From assembly GCA_002189035.1 (NCBI GenBank), contig NEEC01000008.1:806001-870000 (forward strand): a DNA stretch of 64,000 bases, given 5' to 3'. Origin of the DNA: Utricularia gibba (taxonomy: Eukaryota > Plantae > Magnoliophyta). The translations under genes were made by a program, and so were the position numbers. Shown here one piece after another: positions 362-43,272 of the stretch. Each line of letters opens with the position of its first letter. The first letter of the stretch is position 1. The notes beneath the pieces are model-generated. The model saw nothing but the letters and a program-made list of their open reading frames with translations, did not search any database and had not been told where the DNA came from.

Positions 362-679
362 GGTGACACAGCTCCTACAACCTCTTCAATGGCAGATATT
401 CATTTATACATACGAAGAAGAAGCAGGAGCAGAGAAAGAGGGAAGTTGTTCGTATTTGGAAACTGGAAATACTCTGAAAGGAAACACGCCAAACAGCCTT
501 GACTGAGAAGGCTTTCTTTGATTCTCTTGCCTTATTCCAAGTGCAATGCCATTGCCTCAGTCAACTCCCATTCAAATCATATCATACCAAATTATGAACC
601 ATGGAGGTGCGTGATTCTTCTGCAAAATAAGCCGAAACAACGAAGCATCACTCATCACTGATCACTGACTGATGTCCCC

Positions 680-1142
680 AAACTTCAAAGAAGCCATATC
701 TCATTTAAAACCGCAATCTTTCTTCATCTTACCAAATAATGCAACGGCGTCAGTTGGTCTACCGGCCCGAACCAAGCGATCAACAAAAGCTTCAAAACAT
801 TTCACCCCAACTACCCCACGGCCATCAACTAGAACCTCATGGATAGCCTTAAAATCCTTCCTTCTCCCAAAATAACGTACCCAATAAGAGTAAACCTCAT
901 CCGTGGCTTCAAACCCCGGCCTTGATTTCGCCCATCGGGGGAAATCAACCGCCGCACGAAAAAATCGAGCGGAAAGTCTCCCGTTGCTTAAGAGACTCGA
1001 CTTCTCATTTTCTCATGTGACCATTAGTCCCACCTTGCTGCTGGCCACGCTGCACGTAAAGTTCGAGCGGTTCAACCATCTGGGAGCTGTGGAGATGCTG
1101 GGAAGGCATTGACGCAACAAAGAAATCAGGTGGGTTGCGCAT
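680..1142. pseudogene. Rearranged duplicate fragments of the PNM1-like PPR gene (source 34528-35232)
   Basis: 680-959 aligns without gaps to 34528-34807 (14 mismatches counted by eye); 968-1051 is the reverse complement of 34829-34912 (4 mismatches); 1055-1142 aligns to 35134-35232 including the PPR start codon. Confidence 0.95.
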
Positions 1143-1148
1143 TCTCAA

Positions 1149-1400
1149 TGTTGGGTCCGGCCCATTATATCACTTTAGGCAATTAGGAGTTTCCTATATA
1201 AACCAGGCGGCTCATCCGAGTTAGAGTACCGAACCGGAATTGTGGTGGGATCGTTGCTCCTCCTATGCCTTCAGCCATGGTATTTATCCCTTGAATTTGT
1301 TTTGTTGATGATAGGCTTTTGCAGTTGTGGATAGATGCATGTTTGGGTTCTTGGTTGATTTTTTTTTATTGCTTGGTTATTGATTGTGAAAAAATATTTC
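1149..1400 (+). promoter_or_regulatory. Captured copy of the RPL36a promoter, ATG micro-exon and 5' intron part (source about 35336-35587)
   Basis: GGCCCA site II at 1159, TATATAAA at 1195, gccttcagccATG|gtat at 1277-1281; TATA-to-ATG spacing is 82 nt, identical to the source locus (35382 to 35464). Confidence 0.9.
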
Positions 1401-2851
1401 TAGAGTCTAACATGATGTATATATATATGATTGTCCAGAAATCCAGAACGTGTCATCTAATGGAACTTAGATCATTACCAAGCCAACGAAGTCAATTCAG
1501 ATGGTTGTTGTCTATAGTATGCTGCATTCTACTATTCACTCTATCTAACATCTTCATTCAATATTTTGGTAAGTGATACATCACATGTTCTAAATTCTTC
1601 TCAAACTTGACAACATGCATGCTTATAGCTTCCTTTTCTACAGTGAATTTGGAGATATCAATGGTGCTGGATCTCAAACTGCTTAAATATTCCAAAGAAC
1701 TAGAGAAATGGGTAGATCAAATGCCAGAATCAATACATAATTTGACCAATTCCAGATCAGATGCATATCAACTTGATGGAGATATAAGAGTTGATGGGAA
1801 ATCTTCAACTATTCTCATAGCAAGTTCGCAAGATCATATTACCTCTTGGACTTTGAAGCCTTACACTAGAAAATTTGATCCTTATGTAATGAACTATGTC
1901 AAGATGTGGAAGATCAATGCTCAACCTGCTGCAAATCTCCCTTCGTGTGATCGAAAAATGACATCTCCAGCCGTACTATTCTCTGGAGGGGGATATACTG
2001 GAAACCAATTCCATGACTTTACTGATGTGCTTATTCCCCTCTACTTAACATCACGACACTTCAACATGACTGTCGTTTTTCTTTTGACAGATATGCGGTA
2101 CCCTTGGCTCAGAAAATATGTGGACATACTCCACAAGCTTTCCATGTATGAAATTATCAACATGGACAAGGAGAACCAAGTGATATGTTTTACAAAGATG
2201 ATTGTTGGCCTTAGAGCTCACAAAGAGTTTGGAATAGATGTTCTTCAATATCCTCACTACTCCATGATGGACTTTAGGGAGTTCCTCAGAAGCACCTACT
2301 TGCTACAGAGACGTCTGTTACCTAATGGTTCATGCTCAGCAAAGCCTCGGTTGCTCATCATTTCACGGAAGAGCAGCCGTCTCCTGAAGAACGAGGACAG
2401 AGTAGCAGATTTGGCACAGAATATCGGATTACATGTGACAACAACTGAGATAGATGACAAGAACATGACAACAGTTTCAAGATTTGTGAACTCATTTGAC
2501 ATTATCATGGGGGTTCATGGAGCTGGATTAGCCAACATGGTTTACCTACCGGACAATGCAGTTGTGATTGAAATAGTACCTTTTGGAGTGGACTCGTTGG
2601 CAAGACCTTATTTTAATATTCCTTCAAGAGAAATGAACCTGAGATATATTGAATACAAAGTAAGCTTGGAAGAGAGCTCTTTGCTAGGAAGGTATCCAGC
2701 AGACAGTGAAGTGTACCGACATCCAGGTGAAATCCAACGTAAAGGTTTTCTTGGGTTTAGGTCTATTTATCTGGATAATCAAGATGTAACCCTTGATTTG
2801 AATAGGTTTAGGAGGGTTCTTTTGAGAGCCCTGAGTTACATATGTGGCTAG
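1277..2851 (+). CDS. Glycosyltransferase family 61 (DUF563; xylan arabinosyl/xylosyltransferase-like), type II membrane protein; probable exons 1277-1279, 1439-1568, 1644-2851
   Basis: 414-aa ORF with GGYTGNQFHDFTDVLIPLY and FDIIMGVHGAGLANMVYLP..VIEIVPFG motifs; upstream exon encodes a TM helix (WLLSIVCCILLFTLSNIFIQYF) and joins in phase 1. The start exon is inferred; in-frame ATGs also exist at 1412 and 1460. Confidence 0.9.
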
Positions 2852-3046: not shown

Positions 3047-3856
3047 TCAAGTGTCACGGGGAAGGCGCCTCGTTGCAAGTGTAGAATAATAGTGGGACTC
3101 CAACTCCCTCAGGCTAGCAGAGGCTTCTTCACCTATTCTCGCCAGTGATGAGTTTGTGTCATCAGCTAATCTTCCAAATACCTCTGTTTTTTGATCAATG
3201 TGGTCATTCAGAGATGCAAATCCAGAGTAGACCGCAGTCTGCTTCAGCTCAGATACCAGCTTCAGAAGCGAGTCTGCTGCTTGGACCTGTCATACACACA
3301 CACACAGTACACCCAAACACAAATGTCAGCTTCTCCTGAATTCTTCAGATGCATGAGAATGACGACAGTTTACCAAACGTGCAGCCCGCATCTCCATCAT
3401 GAAAGTTTCTTGGGAATTTCTGACTGGTGGATCATTAACCTAGAAGGAGCATTTTACTATTAGATGCAGCCATACTTGAAAGAATCGAACTTTCATCAGA
3501 GGAAGCATGTTTGTTCACATCAGCCGCATCAGGACTTCCACCCAATAGGGCAACTTAACAAATTGACATATTTCTAATGGCAATACTGTCTCCTGCGAGA
3601 CGAATTCCACAATGCGATTTTCTGAGACAAACTTGGGAGATGATCTAAAGATGAAATCTTCACCAAACACCCATCAGTAGAAGGCAAAGGCACATGAACA
3701 TACCCTTGTCGCATTCACCAGGAACCCGAAATTATCCAAAAGATTTCCAATGTCATTGTCCACCCTCTGCAGAAGCGATTTCTGCTTCTGCGCCGCCGCT
3801 GCGGCTGCGGCGTCTGTCGGTCCACCTCCGCCCAGGCCCGCTGCTGCTTTGTTCAT
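3047..3856 (-). CDS. MED22: Mediator subunit 22; exons 3856-3704, 3439-3374, 3286-3047
   Basis: [29 protein letters not shown] / [22 protein letters not shown] / [38 protein letters not shown]; all introns GT-AG and in frame. Confidence 0.95.
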
Positions 3857-17599: not shown

Positions 17600-22918
<5,319 letters not shown>

Positions 22919-28100: not shown

Positions 28101-28990
28101 TTTTAACGCAGCTTCCTAACCCAAAACCAGAAAAATGCATACTCCATTTGTAACAAATTATTTGAATGAAACTTCAACATGAGCATTAAATTCAGTGAAA
28201 ACATTTGGATTCATGGATAGTATAATTAATCAAACCCTACGACAAAAAAAGACTTCCAATTATTGAATTTAGGCACTAACTTGAAAACATGAAAACAATA
28301 TCGATTTAACATATGCTAATTTCATTGAACATAGAATTCTAACATAAAAAATTGTGCGAATCCAGGGATATTGGGCTAATTTAACCAAATTTAAAAAAAA
28401 TAAACAACAAACCTGAGAGGAAATAAGGTAGAAAGATCGCACGCAACTTTTCCCCAAAAACCCAGCAAGAATCGATGCTTCAATTGGCCAACTTGGAAAT
28501 CTAGGTTTTTTTGGGATGCTTCAATTGGCCAACGAGAATCGATCCTTCAAGTATGAGAAGAAGGTATGCTTTATTTCAGTTTTTTTAATTAAATAGAAAT
28601 TATAAAAATAAGGGTAAAATTGTAAATACAATATAAGGTATTAGAAAGTTCAAAGTTTCAAGACTCCACATCCAAATCCTATACCTAAGAGATATTAAAG
28701 TATTTTTTAAAAAAACCTATGGAATAAGCATAATTGATACCAAACACAGGATTTGCAATCCAATACTTTCAAAATAACCCCAATACCCCATGCCAAACAC
28801 ACTCTAATAGGAATCATGATGCCATGTGCATATTGGTTCTTATGAAAGGATGAATGTTTATAAGAATGATTGGAAGACGAACTTTGAATTGAGATTGAAA
28901 GAATGTCGTCTCGTCTATCATCCTTGGAAGTGTCTATGGATTTTTGTTTTTATCGTGATCTGTGTTTACTAATTTATTGGTTTGATAATT
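25180..28990 (-). mobile_element. MULE copy A: 3' end of the 39.3-43.3 kb MULE family in reverse orientation, split by a Harbinger
   Basis: 25.5-26.0 kb and 28.81-28.97 kb align by eye to the reverse complement of about 42360-43000; outer boundary approximate. Confidence 0.8.
26009..28804. mobile_element. PIF/Harbinger element with both ends (about 2.8 kb); transposase on -, Myb/SANT-like ORF on +, both disrupted
   Basis: TIRs GGGTGTGTTTGG (26009) / CCAAACACACTC (28793-28804), TAA TSD at 26006-26008 and 28805-28807; transposase WGALDGTFV..GILTNVLGVC, YYYLGDCGY..RNVIERVWG..KKRWGIL; Myb-like RVWVEEE..SFKAEY..HISSKYKVWK. Confidence 0.93.
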
Positions 28991-29220
28991 AATAGAACAA
29001 CTATATCTAACGGTGCTATCACAACCTAATTTTTTTCTTTTTTCGCATATGAAATCTAAAATACAAGTGTTGTGGAAATCTAAAATGATGTATTATCTTA
29101 ATCACACTCATCGTGTAAAGGGTTAACAACTCTTGCAAAATTGTTAACCAAATACATAGTGCTATAATAAATTCTTGTCCTATGCAATGAACGCAGAATT
29201 AGTGATAAGCCAGTAAATTA

Positions 29221-29868
29221 TACCAACAGATGATTCTGAGTTGCTATTTATATTTGTAGAGAAAAACTTGTATCATCGCTAAGTAGAGGATTAAGAAACC
29301 TTACCAAATAGCATATCAGTACAAGAAGCCGCAATACAGTGGTTACGCCTACAAAAATATGAACTTAATCATCATCAAATTATCACAAACAGAAAGTAGA
29401 AAATGGAGAAGTAGGAAAGATTGATGCTGGAGGTTTGATGAAACTTATGATGCCATCCTATTAATAGGTGGGCTTTTTGTACTCAATTTTGGACCCGATC
29501 CATGATATCATTTTGGGCTACTGGGGTTTACTATATATTGGACGAGAATTGTGGTGGGATCAGTTCTCCTCTAGTGCTTTCAACCATGATATATGCCCAT
29601 TTACTCTATTTTCGTTAATGATATGTTTTTGGAGTTGTGGGTAAATTTATATTTGGGTTTCAAATTAATTTTGTTTATTGCTTGATTATCGATTTCAAAA
29701 AAATATTCCTAAAATCCACTATGATGCATAGATATATAATTGTCTAGAAATAAAAAATATATCATGAAATGAGACTTGTATCACCATCAAACCAACAAAA
29801 GCAATTCAAATGGGTGTTGTCTATAGTTGTTGTATTCTACTATTTACCTTATCTAATATTTTCATAAA
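29221..29868 (+). pseudogene. Decayed second copy of the PNM1-fragment / RPL36a-promoter / GT61-exon chimera
   Basis: 29222-29270 matches 34990-35039; about 29385-29710 matches 35232-35587; 29720-29868 matches the GT61 exon region 1412-1560; donor mutated (ATG ATAT at 29586) and stop in exon. Confidence 0.85.
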
Positions 29869-29879
29869 AACTATCATTT

Positions 29880-31900
29880 TTTATGAATTGAATTACGTAA
29901 TATATGATTCAAGCCTTATAAAAATAATAAAATTGAAATATACTACGATGTATGCTAAATTGATTTAATAGATGGTAAATGTATTAGAATTAAATTTAAA
30001 TCAATTTGAATTTAATTTGATCGTTAAATACTATGATTCTAATATCGGATGTGTCAATTACATTGATAAATAAGAAGATTTAAAGTGTCTACTCTATCTA
30101 TATATTCACTTTAAAAAACAAAATAGGCTAAAAAAAGTTACTCTAAAAAATATTATAATAGTTTTGTTTTTATATGTTAAATAATAATATAGATGCAATC
30201 TATTAAAATAAAAAACATAGAAGTGCATGGTTCGTGCTCATAAATTAGAATTTAAAACTTTGGGAATCACCGATTAAAAAACTATCCAAATTCCTTGAAA
30301 AACTTAAATCTAATAATCTTGGTACTATTATAGAATAAGAGTACAATAAAAATGCATGTGAACGAAATTTGTTCAATTATGTCTTATAGATAATTTGAGT
30401 TCATCATTAAAGTTTTTCAATATTATCATTGAGTTCTCTGTATTGGTGGCGCTCATTTATACAATAGTTATACTTACAAATTGCTAATATATGTGAGTGT
30501 TGATGAAAGTAAGTATATTTTCTCAATCGGATATGCCTTTGTCTATGGAGAATCATAAGAATATTAGAAATTCTTCTTGCGACAAGTTGACCAACATGTT
30601 GTCTATGGAAGAAATGGTGTTTGTAAGATACTTGATCATGGCCCGGATTTGATTGTTGTATATGAAAGATATGAACGGTTCAGCTATACTTATGAAATAC
30701 ATTATTGGTGCAATTTGTATGTTTGAAAGAATTGTATGTTATTTATTAATAAAAAGTTGAAAGAAGTTGGGTATTCGATCAAAAGGGCATTATATGCAAT
30801 AAATGAAAACAATTTCAATGCAAATATGGTATAAATACTAAAAAAGATTTTATTGATACACGTGATTACTTATTGAAAATTCTAAAATAAAAATTGATAT
30901 TATTTTACAATATAAGACAAATGCATTAAATCTAACGAATTTATCATATTTAATTAAATTATCACATTTTTTATTTGAAACATACACTTAATCATGATAA
31001 CAAATCAGATCAAATTTATTAACAATGTTTTAAGAGTAGCTCAATGTAATTTTCAATTGCACTTGCAAAGATAACTTGCTAATTAATTTATCTTCAATTG
31101 AATATTTTATTTGACGTATTCCATGATACTTTAAAGTAACATTTGAAAAAGCATGTTAGTACTTTAAATGATATAGGATGGCAACATACAAATGATATAC
31201 AAATAAAATATTTTTGAATGATAAGGTTTATGAAAAGTATAAACAAGTATCGAAATTTATACCAAAACTTATATGCACAAAATACGACTCAACAAATCAA
31301 ACTTATACATTGTAACTTCGAATACAATATTTAATAAACATAAAAACGGTTGAAGTCAAAAATAGAAAATGTAAATGCGGGGTTTGATAGATTGATAGAT
31401 ATCCATGTGTTCATGCTCAAATGATAAGTGATTTAAATATCACACTAATTTAATAATATTGTTCAATTTTTTATCTAAAATAAATAATTTGAAGATTTGT
31501 CATCAATTTCATGTGAATCCATTATATACAATGAGTGTTTATTATAACATTATATATTTGATCGAAATACATCTATTAGAATGAAAAAAAAGATGGCATT
31601 CTTCCAATCTCAATTCAAACTTAATCTTCCAACTATTTTTATGGATACTCATCCTTCACGAGAGTCAATATGTCTTGGATATTATGACTTCTGCTTTTCA
31701 ATGATATTCTATATCAATATTGCGATCAAATCCACCTAACTTACCAACAACATTAGCAATAAAAATATAAAAAATTTAAGTCAATGTGTAAATCATTTTT
31801 TTCATTTGATCCATTAATTTTGGCAATTGTCATTTGAGTTATATGATATTTAGCTTATTTGTTTAATAAAATTACTTAAATTGAGTTAATTTTATATTTT
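29880..31900 (+). mobile_element. MULE copy B: internally deleted, decayed relative of the 39.3-43.3 kb element
   Basis: Blocks match 39800-39960, 40890-40950, 41170-41500, 41700-42200 and 42410-42670 by eye. Confidence 0.8.
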
Positions 31901-33614: not shown

Positions 33615-35232
33615 TTAAGCACGGCGCATCGTGCGTTTTGGTTTCTTGACATAGCTTAGCCTGATTTTCTTGAGGCGTCTTCTCTTCCTGGCCATCTTCT
33701 CGGGGAGCGTTTCCCTTTTGCTTTCCCTCTTCGCGCCTGCTGCAGCTTTCTTTTGACAAACTTGGGATCCACCCTGTATTCCTTTGGCTCCACAGGTATT
33801 CCATTGCTCTCAGCTTCCTTGTAGAGTGCATTGGCCTTGTCAAAACGCCCATGAGCGCATAGTTTTGCCATCAACAGGTCATATGTTTTGATGCCAGGTT
33901 GACAACCATCCCTTTTCATCATTTCAAAAACTCTCAAAGCATGGTAGAATCTTTCGATTCCGCACAAAGCACGGATGAATTCGTAGTAAACCTTCTTATC
34001 TAGAGCATCTCCATAACCAGCGGATTTCATCTTATCGATCATCTCATCTCCTTCCCCCACACGGGCTGCCTGATACAAACTCTTGGTAAGGACGATAAAG
34101 GTAGTTTCATTGGGTGGCAGCTCCACTCCCCCATCCTGGAAAACAGTTTCACTGCATCCTCCGTTTTCCTAATCTTGCATAAGTTGGTAATCAGTATGTT
34201 AAATGTGTCCACGTTGCGGGGAACACCCTTTCTTTCCATCTCAATCAACAGATTCTGCGTCTCAGATTCAAGCCGGAAGGGATCCTTCTGCCTGCAAAGC
34301 CTACAAACACAGTCTAGAAGACAATTGTATGCAAATGTACTTATCTCGAAGCCTCCTCTGGACATCTCATTCATCAATCTTCTTGCCTCTTCTAATTTTC
34401 CATCTACACACCACCCACTGATCAAGGCATCACAAATGTAGTCATCAGGAAAGAACTCATTAGCCAAACTCTTGACCATCTTTTCAGCATAGCTGGCGTA
34501 CCCTCGCTCGCAGAGACTGGAAACAACAAACTTCAAAGAACTCATATCTCTTTTAAAACCATAATCTTTCTTCATCTTACCAAATAATGCAACGGTATCA
34601 CTTGGTCTACCGGCCCGAACCAAGCGATCAACAAAAGCTTCAAAACATTTCACCCCAACTACCCCACGGCCATCAACCAGAGCCTCATGGATAGCCTTAA
34701 AATCCTTCCTTCTCCCAAAATAATGTACCCAATAAGAGTAAACCTCATCCGTGGCTTCAAACCCCGGCCTTGATTTCGCCCATTGGAGGAAATCAAGCGC
34801 CGCACGACCCGCATCAGGCGAAATGTTGAGCGTGGCAAGCAGCAAGGTGGGATTAATGGTCACATGAGAAAATGAGAAGTCGAGACTTTTAAGCAACGGG
34901 AGACTTTCCGCTTCCGGCGATTGCAAGAGCTCATTAGAGAGAAGTTTCGCCGAGGCATCTTCATCTTCTCCAACTTCCTTTTGTTTCTCACCAACAGAGG
35001 ATCCCGAGGCGACATCTATATTCGTAGAGAAAAGCCTTGCGCTCGCGGAGAAGAGCTGAAATTGAGGAACAGAGAAGGGATTCTCATACACTGTACATCG
35101 ATAAGGCTCCCGCCCCAGAACAGGATACGGATGCGTAAAAATCAAGCGGTTCAACGATCTTGGAGCTCTGGAGATGCTGCGAAGGCATTGACGCAAGTTT
35201 GGCGCCAAGGAAGAAATCAAGGGCTTGCGCAT
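33615..35232 (-). CDS. PNM1: P-type PPR protein, PNM1-like (mitochondrial/nuclear; mitoribosome-associated); single exon with two apparent 1-nt frameshifts (about 34113 and about 33752)
   Basis: Mitochondrial-type presequence, PPR repeats (YNCLLDCVC, TFNILITNL, TYDLLMAKL) and basic C-terminus KRETLPEKMARKRRRLKKIRLSYVKKPKRTMRRA, as recalled for PNM1. Confidence 0.85.
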
Positions 35233-35463
35233 TTTCACAGAAAAGAGGAACTGGAGTGAAGCAGGAAGCAGTTCTGGAGGTGCGACGAAAACCTATGACG
35301 GCGTCGTATTAGTGGGTGGGCTTTTGGGATTCAGTGTTTGGGCTCGGCCCATTATATCATTTTAGGCCGTTAGAGGTTTAGTATATAAATGTTAGGGCTC
35401 CTCCAAATTAGGGTACTGAACGGGGAATCGTAATCGATTGCTGCTCCTTCGGTGCCTTCAGCC
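35233..35463. promoter_or_regulatory. Bidirectional promoter between PNM1-like and RPL36a (231 bp between start codons)
   Basis: Head-to-head ATGs at 35232 and 35464; site II TGGGCT at 35317 and 35339, GGCCCA at 35346; TATATAAA at 35382. Confidence 0.8.
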
Positions 35464-36445
<982 letters not shown>

Positions 36446-36600
36446 GCCAAGGACTAGGGTCCGGAGTCGCTGCTCGTTTTGTGGACTTCGCCCTTCTGCA
36501 TGATGCTTTATTTGATGAACCTGTCTTAATTGGGCTTGTTTCCTGGTTTCAAACCTCTTACAAGCTTGCTGTTTTCCTAGAAGAATACATTTGGTTGGAA

Positions 36601-39275: not shown

Positions 39276-42200
39276 AGATGTACTTAACTATTTTGGTTTC
39301 TAAAATAAATGAGGTTGATAAATAATTACTGAAATAGATGTAGTTTTTTTTCTGATTTGATAAATAAATGATATTACTAAAATATTAAATTTTAAGTATT
39401 TAATTATTTATTTTCAATGAATTTAAATGACAATAAATATTCTTATGAATTGATTATATCTAAATAATGCTTTAATATTTAATTAATTTAATAAAATTAA
39501 AGTTTTTTAACATTTAAAATATATAAATGATAGCTTGGATGTTTTTAAAATAATTTTGTAAGACAAAACAAGTGATTGATTTTAAGATAATAAAGTTGTG
39601 GATAATCATGAGATATACAAATGAATGGTTTAAATTCCATCTTGTAACAAAAATATCTCCAAACTTTCTTTATAAATAAGTTCATGATTTCATGAAAACT
39701 CACACAAAACTTTTCAATTTTCTTAACTTCTTGTTGTTCATTACAGCAATGAAGAAAGTAGTGGTTAAGATTTTCTATGTATAAAATCTTATTCGCGATC
39801 AATTGGATTATGTATCATATGATTGAGATCCAATAAAAATAATAAAATTGAAATACACTACGATGTATGAAAAATTAGTTGAGTATCTTGCAAATGAATT
39901 AGAATTAAATTTAAATTCTCTTGAATTTAATTTATCAACTAAGTTCTATGATTCTAATACCGAAAGTGCCAATTATATGGATATTACAAACATAGAAATG
40001 TTGCGATTTGTTTTGAAGCTACATAACTCAGAATATGGTATTGACTTGTTCGTGAGTACAAGAGCTAAGTGGGGTGACATTTCAACAAATTATCAAGGTA
40101 TATTTTCTATTATCTTATTGAACTTGCGAGTGAACCACGTTATAATATTGCGCATCCATTAAATGATGATCAAGGAGAATTTGATCCGTTTTGGAATCAA
40201 ACAACTCAAGTTGATTATGCGAGTTTTCATTATAGTGAATCTAATATCTCACATCATGAAGTTTCAAACACCTATAACAGTAATGAAGACTCAACATATA
40301 TTCCTAATGAGGAAGAAGATGAATTATAAGAAGTTCAATACATGTGGAATGAGGAATCTGGTGAATCTGATGAATCTTCTATGGAAGATGAAGATATGGA
40401 TTTTTACATCCCAAAACAAACTAATCATTTTTATTTATGCATATGAGTTTCAAGATAGAGTTCAAATAAACACTTATGATGTTGATAACAAAATTTTGGA
40501 AGAAGGTATGCATTTCAAAGATAAACAGGAGCTTATTGATGCAATGACTCTCTATCATGTAAAAGTTGCACATAGAGAAATTAGAGTGGAAAGCAATTCT
40601 CAGAAACAATATTGCATCCGGTGCCGACAAAATAAGGAAGAGAACTCTAATTGCTCGTTCTATCTATGGGTTGGCTTTCAAAAACAAACTGGAACTTGGA
40701 AGATTTCTAAGTTGGTGCAACCTCATACATGTGAGATAAGTTTTAGCATTTCCAAGTCAAATGTTAATTTGACTATAAAGTATATTGCACCAAGGTTAAA
40801 AGAACTTGCTTCAGAAAAGCTTATTTTTTAATTTGTGCGCTTATATGTTAAACACCAATGGGGATGCAATATATCGAAATTAAAGGCATGGAAGTGTATA
40901 GTTCGTGCTCATGAATTAGAATTTGAAACTTGGGAATCCAGTTAGAGAGCTACCAAGGTTTTTTTGAAGATGTTAAGTCTAGTAATCCTAGCACCATTGT
41001 AGAATGGGAGCACAATAAAGATGTATATGGGCGAAATTTATTATAGTATGTCTTTTGGGCATTTGGATTTACTATTCAAGGCTTTGAGTATTGTCGCCCG
41101 ATTCTCTGTATTGATGGCACTCATTTCTATAGTAGTTATAATTACAAGTTGCTAGTATGTGTAGGTATTGATGGAAGTAATTGTGTTTTTCCGATCGCAT
41201 ATGCTTTTGTTTATGGAGAATCAGAAGAAGATTGGGAATTCTTCATCTGACAACTTGATCGACATGTTGTCTGTGGAAGAAATGGTGTTCGTATGATAAG
41301 TGATCGTGGTTCTGGTTTGATCGCCGCATATAAAAGATATGAACGATTTAGCTATACTTATAGGATACATCATTAGTGTAATTTTCATATTCAAAAGAAT
41401 TGCATGTCATTTATTAATATGAAGTCGAAGGAAGTTAGATATTGGATTGAAAGGGCATCATATGCTAGAAATGAAAAAGATTTCAATGCAACGATGACAT
41501 AATTACAAAAAAGAGCTCTTGATGCAATTGATTACTTGCTGAAAATTCCAAAAGAAGAACAGACGTTACTTTACGGTGGTAGATATAGGTAAATGAATTT
41601 AATGAATTTTTTTTAAATTTAATTAAATTACTTAATTTTTTCTATTTAAAACAATCACTTGATCATGACCACAAACCATGCGGAGTTTATGAACAATGTT
41701 TTACAAGCAGCTCGAAGAAGACCTCCAACTACCCTTGTAATATAATTGACATATTATATAATACTTTAAGTTAACATTTGAGAAAGCACGTGAGTATTTC
41801 AAGTGATACAGGGTGGCAGCATATGAACGACATACAAATTGAATATTTTTGGGTGATAAGATGTACGAAAAATATGAGAAAGCATCAAGACTTATATCAA
41901 ATCTTACTTGCAAGATATACGACTCAAGAAATCAAACTTGTATAGTGAAGCTTCGAATGTAGCATTCTGTAGACACAAAAACAGTCGAAGTTCGAGATGG
42001 AAAATGTGAATACGGGATTTGGTATATTGATCAATATCTATGTGTTCATGCCCAAATGGTAAGTGGTTTATACCTCACACTAATTTAATACTATTGTTCA
42101 TTTTTTATATCTAAAGTGAATAATATGCAGGTTTGTCATCAATTCCGTGTGAATCCGCTGCATAGGACAAGTCCTTATTACAGTACTATGTATTTGGTTA

Positions 42201-43272
42201 ACATTTATGCTGGAGTTGTTAACACTTTACGTGATGAGCATAATTGGGGTGACGCACCATTCCAGGTTTTCATGGATCCTTTGCGAAAAAGGAAGAAATC
42301 AGGCCATGACAATACTAATAGACATAGGGGTCCCGTTGATTACCAACAGAGTGGTAAACATGGATCACGACGCAAATAGAAATCAAAGGACACTTCCCAG
42401 GATGATAGACGAGACAACATTCTCCCAACTTCAATGCAAACTTCATCTTCATATCATTCTTATAGACATTCATCATTTCATGAGAGTCACTATACACTAG
42501 GTATCATGACTCCTATTATTGCACGACATTCTACATCAATATCGTGATCAAAGCCATCTGACTTGCCAACAACGTCAACAACTCAATCCAAAAAGTCAAA
42601 GTCAAAGAGTAAACCGTTTTTTTTCTTTTGATTTGTTAATTTCAGTATTTTCATTTGAATTATGTAATATCTTACTCCTTTGTTTGGTGAGATTGGTTAA
42701 ATATTGAATTTTTTATTTTTTATTATAAATAATATGTAATATCATATGTCATGGTATAAAATAAATGAAAATTAATTATGTATAATTTTATATAATTCAT
42801 AATCTAAATCAATATGATTTTTGAACAAAATCAATGAAATAAATGAAAAAATTATCAAAAATGAAAAACACAAATGATAAAATTAACTTTTTGAAACAAA
42901 TGTAATAAGATTACAAATCATAAAAAACAAATAAATAATTTTTTACATTTATTTAAATTTAAACAAATGATTTATATATAAAACTTGATTATTTTTTTAT
43001 TTTCTAAATTAAATATATGATTTATATAATTATTTATAAAAAAACTTATAGTAATATTAATTCATTTATATTAAATAGCATACATTATTTTGAAATATTA
43101 TGAAAATAATATATAATCATTTATTTAATAATTTTTAACAATAATTAGTTACATTGTTTTTATAAAGTTTTTAAACTCATTTATTTTGTAAATCAAAACT
43201 CAATCATCATCTATTTTAGAAACCATTTTTAAACATCATCTATTTTGACAAACAAAAACTGAAAGTACATCT
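39276..43272 (+). mobile_element. MULE/MuDR element copy C with terminal inverted repeats and decayed transposase (about 39850-42380)
   Basis: Ends AGATGTACTT (39276) / AAGTACATCT (43263-43272) with further subterminal symmetry; MuDR domain (EGMHFKDKQEL..WKISKLVQPHTC), MULE domain (CRPILCIDGTH..FPIAYA..GESEEDW..ISDRGSGL), SWIM-like segment; stops and frameshifts. Confidence 0.88.

Follow-up and report, generated by a model that had tools for sequence, protein, structure and literature searches.

A 64,000-nt window of the Utricularia gibba genome (contig NEEC01000008.1, positions 806,001 to 870,000) carries a gene for a GT61 glycosyltransferase whose immediate 5′ flank derives from the ribosomal-protein gene RPL36a, itself present elsewhere in the same window. 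An earlier note, made from the letters of this DNA, had proposed that GT61 is driven by a captured RPL36a promoter, ATG micro-exon and first intron, and that a cell-wall enzyme was thereby rewired to housekeeping- or proliferation-type expression. The presence of RPL36a-derived DNA in front of GT61 is confirmed by the analysis reported here. The locus is probably best understood overall as a resident GT61 gene whose 5′ end was replaced long ago, in this lineage only; the type of expression that had been proposed for it finds much less support. The elements on which the argument relies are the following, in positions of the window.

679–1051, minus strand: recent patches of PNM1 (PPR) coding sequence, non-functional; 679–959 is 95% identical to 34527–34807, and 968–1051 is 95% identical to 34829–34912, inverted
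1055–1147, minus strand: old PNM1 N-terminal coding fragment, 78% identical to 35134–35237, part of the block originally captured
1148–1276, plus strand: RPL36a-derived promoter and 5′ untranslated region (5′UTR), with one site II motif (1159–1164), the TATA box TATATAAA (1195–1202), a 97-nt deletion at the left edge and a new in-frame ATG at 1265
1277–1279, plus strand: ATG taken over from RPL36a (context GCCATGG), with a GT donor next to it at 1280
1280–1410, plus strand: start of RPL36a intron 1 (131 nt, 78% identical), with a CTAAC branch-point-like motif at 1406–1410
1411–1438, plus strand: GT61-derived DNA with the probable ancestral ATG at 1412, then TTGTCCAG, and the candidate acceptor AG at 1437–1438
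1439–1568, plus strand: GT61 exon for the cytosolic tail and membrane anchor, encoding WLLSIVCCILLFTLSNIFI
1569–1643, plus strand: GT61 intron, its position conserved in orthologues
1644–2851, plus strand: main exon of GT61, encoding the catalytic domain (PF04577) and ending with the stop codon
29389–29865, plus strand: decayed second copy of the fusion (copy B) with the same junction; TATA box and donor lost, stop codons present, truncated, flanked by transposon-like repeats
33656–35238, minus strand: PNM1/mL104 (rPPR9), a PPR gene and the full-length parent, transcribed to ~35261–35269
35239–35463, no strand assigned: head-to-head promoter region of 225 bp, with three site II motifs and a TATA box
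35464–36446, plus strand: RPL36a (eL42), four exons, highly expressed

The copied block extends over 1055–1410 and is, as a whole, ~77% identical to 35134–35606, located ~34 kb away on the same strand. BLAST aligns 35338–35584 with 1151–1398 at 76.7% identity over 249 nt (E = 1e-44), and the upstream continuation, 35134–35237 matched with 1055–1147, at 78% (E = 2e-16). The previous assignment of 1149–1400 as a diverged copy of 35336–35587 is thus upheld, and with it the derivation of the GT61 5′ flank from the promoter, the ATG and the start of intron 1 of RPL36a. The block comprises the first ~35 codons of PNM1, the promoter shared by the two parental genes, the RPL36a 5′UTR, the ATG, the GT donor and 131 nt of intron 1, the captured share of that intron being only 131 of 449 nt. 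Homology to the RPL36a parent stops at 1410 and GT61-derived DNA begins at 1411, with the breakpoint 1–2 nt 5′ of the GT61 reading frame; the locus exhibits the two parental sequences and the defined junction by which a chimera is recognized. Because it holds mere fragments of both PNM1 and RPL36a, the copy is the derived side. Its parent is the neighbouring RPL36a and not the expressed paralogue of that gene, given that the heptamer GCCTTCA before the ATG is common to the copy and the neighbouring gene while the paralogue has GCAGGCG there.

The GT61 gene that received this new 5′ end has an intact reading frame. Joining 1277–1279, 1439–1568 and 1644–2851 yields a stop-free translation of 447 aa, in which PF04577 (Glyco_transf_61) is recognized with 47.6 bits compared to a gathering cut-off of 27 (E = 2.5e-12). 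There are 839 homologues (best E = 6e-160), and in a 12-sequence alignment that includes the window protein 75 invariant columns are kept, among them G.Y.GN.FH.F.D and GVHGAGL.N. Residues 23–41 form a membrane anchor (mean Kyte–Doolittle hydropathy 2.37) that aligns with the anchor of the orthologues and conforms, on the basis of hydropathy, to a type II topology; the transmembrane helix and the GT61 domain with intact motifs, both read in the earlier note, are accordingly well founded. The nearest relatives are from Lamiales (Genlisea 65%, Handroanthus 62%, Erythranthe 57–59%), and the protein collection searched contained no GT61 above 65% identity to the window protein. A role as a xylan-modifying enzyme is what we infer from membership in the family (PMC5181589, PMC6297846).

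Comparison of GT61 with three orthologues gives proportions of nonsynonymous difference (pN) of 0.20–0.24 versus proportions of synonymous difference (pS) of 0.70–0.82, indicative of purifying selection. The branch of nonsynonymous distance (dN) leading to the window gene, calculated from pairwise dN, is ~0.116, compared to 0.115 for Genlisea and 0.155 for Handroanthus, and there is no sign of relaxed constraint. In simulation, a GT61 frame subjected to 10% neutral substitution remains free of stop codons with a probability of 0.002. Computation shows that GT61 was kept under purifying selection after receiving its new 5′ end, and because the coding sequence stayed under such selection, the gene is considered functional.

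Non-chimeric GT61 orthologues are found in four other Lamiales. A search of related genomes for the fusion returned GT61 flanks free of RPL36a-like DNA in Handroanthus, Erythranthe and Genlisea. In Erythranthe guttata, the sequence that follows GT61 matches 18561–20972 of the window with order and orientation kept, and due to this colinearity the window gene is the positional counterpart of the non-chimeric genes and appears to sit at its ancestral place. The closest proteins from Handroanthus, Erythranthe and Orobanche begin MAYDSIFSRSFS.., a tail that differs from the one in the window. The Genlisea aurea GT61 has a different, short N-terminus, MNRVYRHRQKRWW.., and a telo box, TTAGGGTTT, ~200 bp 5′ of its ATG (1955–1975 of the Genlisea locus); the DNA upstream of this gene shows no similarity to the RPL36a promoter. 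At its other end the GT61 gene of the window is faced by Med22 (minus strand, 3053–3790), which converges on it with a transcript ending ~30–45 nt from the GT61 stop, so that the 3′ ends of the two genes must all but meet, or even overlap. The Med22 of Genlisea aurea has PNM1 as its convergent partner.

The age of the fusion can be gauged from copy B. The RPL36a/GT61 junction is common to copy B and to the copy in front of the intact gene (copy A), and the join therefore predates their split. In copy B the site II motif GGCCCA has become GATCCA, 28 nt are deleted in the TATA region, the donor GT has changed to AT, stops occur after the acceptor, and the sequence ends before the end of the anchor exon; the loss of landmarks previously ascribed to the copy near 29.5 kb is borne out by the first three of these changes. 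Pairwise distances (K) lie between 0.26 and 0.43 and are similar in all three comparisons among the parent, copy A and copy B, for which reason the fusion is judged to be old (K ~0.3) and its duplication to have followed soon after. Synonymous distances (dS) of the neighbouring PPR gene are ~1.3–1.4 to Sesamum, Orobanche and Genlisea, versus 0.69 between Sesamum and Orobanche; on these distances, a K of ~0.3, set beside a dS to other Lamiales families of ~1.35, puts the event at a time when the plant's own lineage had long been separate. Dating through relatives failed, since dS is saturated, at least 1.3, to every available Lamiales species. Copy B is flanked by A+T-rich repeats (28805–31560 and 39798–42518) that are 71–79% identical, give no Pfam hits and are probably transposon remnants.

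At the parental locus, the best relatives of the 33656–35238 product are named PNM1 or mitoribosomal mL104 (rPPR9). The start codons of PNM1 and RPL36a are 225 bp apart and RNA contigs of PNM1 reach 35261–35269, and the region between them is therefore a head-to-head promoter; its site II motifs are at 35317, 35339 and 35346, within ~150 bp of the RPL36a ATG. Intron 1 of RPL36a follows directly after the ATG and is in phase 0, as had been claimed, and the later exons (35916–36095, 36215–36289, 36386–36446) give a clean eL42/L44e protein of 105 aa, PF00935 (Ribosomal_L44) scoring 62.2 bits in exon 2 compared to a cut-off of 25. Introns 2 and 3 are skipped by RNA contigs at GT..AG borders with a depth of ~90–240. 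The start site of RPL36a was unreadable from the RNA, the sole contig over the ATG being that of a 504-nt paralogue with a different intron. This paralogous contig is identical to the window over 35 nt at 35461–35495, comprising 3 nt ahead of the ATG, the ATG and the opening 29 nt of intron 1; past this point the introns differ. The start of the intron may thus be constrained; Rfam detected nothing in the window, and no snoRNA accounts for the conserved intron start. RPL36a was absent from the 10 kb around PNM1 in Sesamum alatum and Orobanche gracilis and from a 10.7-kb contig of Genlisea aurea (~5.5 kb on the upstream side), and because it is missing beside PNM1 in the three Lamiales examined, the pairing of the two genes is regarded as lineage-specific. 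PNM1 itself has, around 34112, one base fewer in a C run than three orthologues, and its frame is split into pieces of 399 aa and 156 aa, whether through a genuine frameshift or through a fault in the assembly.

Which DNA serves as promoter of the chimeric gene can be approached by elimination. The upstream neighbour of GT61 is a minus-strand phytocyanin gene with its ATG at 361, and 679–1410 is all captured DNA; the ~600 bp upstream of the gene consist of nothing else. Since a maintained gene needs a promoter, the captured DNA is the likeliest source of it, and the captured core promoter (TATA box at 1195, one site II motif) is suggested, with somewhat better than even confidence, to be the one in use. 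GGCCCA is present at 1159–1164 in the copy and at 35346–35351 in the parent, and TATATAAA at 1195–1202 and 35382–35389, respectively; the distance from TATA box to ATG (1277 and 35464) is 82 nt in both, without an indel, and the string GCCTTCAGCCATGGT around the ATG is identical. Together with the GT donor, the landmarks singled out in the earlier note were all found in the copy. None of 22 pre-chosen core-motif positions has changed, compared to ~25% of the surrounding positions; with P = 0.02–0.10 for a neutral rate of 10–17% on the lineage, their retention is only nominally unusual.

From this putative promoter, two ways of producing the protein can be envisaged. The inherited donor may pair with the AG at 1437–1438, which is followed in frame by AAA TCC AGA; the in-frame acceptor had been correctly noted, and the spliced form is the uninterrupted 447-aa model. 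The candidate intron (1280–1438) is 159 nt long with 70% A+T and CTAAC ~29 nt before the AG, and the frame is kept. An extra ATG at 1265, gained in the copy, is in frame with that at 1277, and if the 1279/1439 splice represents the main RNA form, to which we assign a little less than an even chance, the protein would start MKSRTC.. or MPSAMKSRTC... Alternatively, translation may proceed from GT61's own ATG at 1412 or from the ATG at 1460. If the intron is retained, the captured ATG reads MVFIP-stop and an in-frame ATG is available at 1412, both as had been pointed out; the unspliced leader contains five upstream ATGs. The reading from 1412 begins MMYIYMIVQKSRTCHLMELRSL and is colinear with the orthologue sequence MAY-DSIF--SRSFSQYHELRKL at M1, Y3, I7 and S11-R12, then E-L-R, the length differences from orthologues being multiples of three. 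Because it aligns with the orthologue start codon with indels of this type, ATG 1412 probably marks the place where GT61 translation began before the fusion. If so, the whole coding sequence may be GT61's own, with promoter and leader as the exchanged part. Pairing of the RPL36a donor with an acceptor born inside GT61 codons 8–9 is proposed more tentatively: it would have created a new phase-0 intron, changed the N-terminus from MAYDSIF.. to M(PSAM)KSRTC.. and left the old start codon inside the intron.

Transcription was assessed in four small RNA runs of Utricularia gibba (the search gave small runs with 7–9% of the sampled words), two of which were picked for holding GT61 words, a bias in favour of GT61; contig depth is a crude measure of abundance. 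The two runs picked for GT61 words each give a single contig in the GT61 body, 214 nt long at depth 2.9 in one and 188 nt long at depth 3.7 in the other; the remaining two runs give none. Depth in the same runs is 90–300 for RPL36a exons, 12–20 for PNM1 and 20–44 for Med22, and the gap between RPL36a and GT61 exceeds 25-fold in all four. In samples rich in RPL36a RNA, GT61 is close to silent; its expression would accordingly be weak or confined to certain tissues, and the captured promoter does not behave like its parent. In this comparison, made across four runs, GT61 output (depth 0–3.7) is not ribosomal-protein-like, and the idea of a housekeeping- or proliferation-type rewiring is contradicted, or at the least weakened.

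A body of evidence weighs against use of the captured core promoter and of the splice from its ATG. The 97-nt deletion in the copy took out the 5′ end of PNM1 and, of the three site II motifs, two; where the parental 5′UTR has the telo-like TAGGGT, the copy has TAGAGT. It was therefore wrong to say that every regulatory landmark had been kept, one of three TGGGCY motifs being left and TAGGGT mutated. Identity to the parent is 72% in the promoter part versus 78% in the captured intron part, and the longest identical run in the copy is not exceptional (P = 0.27), on which grounds selection on the promoter as a whole is rejected. The suggestion that retention reflects selection is weakened as well, the retention of the core motifs being unusual only at a nominal level. 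Changes unique to one copy number 17 in copy A and 30 in copy B, a difference that is not significant (P = 0.08). The donor is without its former G at +5 (GTATGA to GTATTT), and the conserved residues M.Y...I..SR and ELR read from ATG 1412 fit a transcript that begins downstream of the captured ATG. Contig depth is zero over 1122–2305 in the four RNA runs, a search for RNA runs holding 1200–1700 listed none, and the two weak GT61 contigs, coming from strand-less data, could be antisense read-through from Med22.

How far these points carry depends on the explanation to which they are applied. That a working promoter of the ribosomal-protein type drives GT61, with splicing from the captured ATG micro-exon and strong, housekeeping- or proliferation-linked expression, would agree with the conserved TATA box, single site II motif, spacing, ATG context and donor, and with an in-frame splice of good intron composition. 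It is nonetheless distinctly improbable in view of a GT61 depth of 0–3.7 against 90–300 for RPL36a in four runs, two of them chosen for GT61 words. Ribosomal-protein promoters are marked by a telo box (AAACCCTA) plus two or more site II (TGGGCY) motifs (PMC3022908), and the copy, with one TGGGCY and no AAACCCTA or ACCCTA compared to three TGGGCY and one ACCCTA core in the parent, has neither; most of intron 1 was not captured either. The low expression, unlike that of a ribosomal protein, also fits a model in which the captured core promoter is unused and transcription starts within the A+T-rich, intron-derived DNA at ~1340–1410, with translation from ATG 1412 or 1460 and the RPL36a piece being at most an upstream activating region. 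The five upstream ATGs would then be avoided, and the alignment of ATG 1412 with the orthologue start, in a frame open through multiple-of-three indels, would be explained. We regard this possibility as unlikely, though as one to be taken seriously, because 1340–1410 shows no recognizable core promoter element and because the captured TATA box, site II motif and ATG context are unchanged despite ~25% change around them.

Near-zero coverage in the four RNA runs and the Med22 transcript end only 30–45 nt from the GT61 stop would also suit a GT61 that is now silent, an intact frame lacking a working promoter with the weak RNA arising from read-through or noise. This is very unlikely: the frame has remained open since a join that the divergence of the captured flank and of the sister copy puts at K ~0.3, and a frame free of stops after 10% neutral change has P = 0.002. 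Copy B, in the same span of time, fell into decay, and the dN branch length is without relaxation. The chance that the duplicated segment is an assembly artefact is close to nil. Between the copies, 23% of positions are different and several indels have accumulated, where artefacts would be near-identical; the junction occurs twice, in diverged form; and zero-mismatch RNA contigs confirm the copy-specific 906–1099, the inverted joint included. Due to this divergence, the doubled junction and the copy-specific RNA, misassembly is ruled out for practical purposes.

The explanation favoured here, in which GT61 was already resident and had its 5′ end replaced, can be cast into a sequence of events. 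A piece of DNA would have been copied from the head-to-head PNM1–RPL36a promoter region, 34 kb off, and joined to GT61 at a point 1–2 nt 5′ of its start codon; later the fusion would have been duplicated and the second copy have decayed. The event is placed at the level of DNA because promoter and intron DNA are included in the copy, and an origin by retroposition is rejected for the same reason. Short patches templated by a nearby locus, including an inverted one, would be consistent with repair by template switching or with break filling of the copy-and-paste type. The PNM1 patches at 679–1051 contain a stop codon and mainly replacement changes, and probably arose recently, by templated repair or by gene conversion, with the locus 34 kb off as their source. 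They are transcribed, as judged from zero-mismatch RNA contigs at 906–1099, and adjoin the old block with its 77% identity. The PNM1–RPL36a and GT61 loci thus seem to have interacted twice. If the new-intron proposal is true, the recent 95% patch beside the fusion would show that both loci still exchange sequence.

Provided that the captured promoter is in use, the locus offers a dated (K ~0.3) example of a plant enzyme gene that survived the full exchange of its regulatory region, and it would illustrate how repair templated by a neighbouring locus may rewire the expression of a gene and perhaps even give it a new intron. Copy B serves as a built-in control, a sister copy that decayed. The RNA data argue against the most striking part of the earlier claim, which was housekeeping-level expression of a cell-wall enzyme.

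Regarding known systems, plants offer many well-documented chimeric genes that arose through partial duplication, and the GT61 locus is a further, well-delimited case. A survey of rice chromosome 3 identified 14 of 28 young genes as chimeric (PMC3673630). The likeness to these consists in two identifiable nearby parents, a join at the DNA level and an intact recipient frame with signs of selection. The rice chimeras are less than 1 My old, whereas the GT61 fusion is old (K ~0.3); its donor gives at most one to five codons, so that the protein is essentially unchanged, and its chimeric transcript is a predicted one. As regards plant ribosomal-protein promoters (PMC3022908), the parent agrees with them in its three site II motifs and TATA box, and the copy still has a single site II motif as well as a TATA box whose spacing is unchanged; it differs in being without multiple site II motifs or a telo box, and the gene is expressed below the ribosomal-protein level. 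With the xylan-decorating GT61 enzymes of the XAT, XYXT and MUCI21 types, including the GT61 of Plantago mucilage (PMC5181589, PMC6297846, PMC12579940), the window protein shares PF04577, the type II anchor and the invariant residues; its best relatives are Lamiales GT61 proteins at 55–65% identity, and its N-terminal tail differs from MAYDSIFSRSFS. Seen against these systems, the GT61 fusion is unusual only in its age, in the survival of a dead twin and in a possible new intron.

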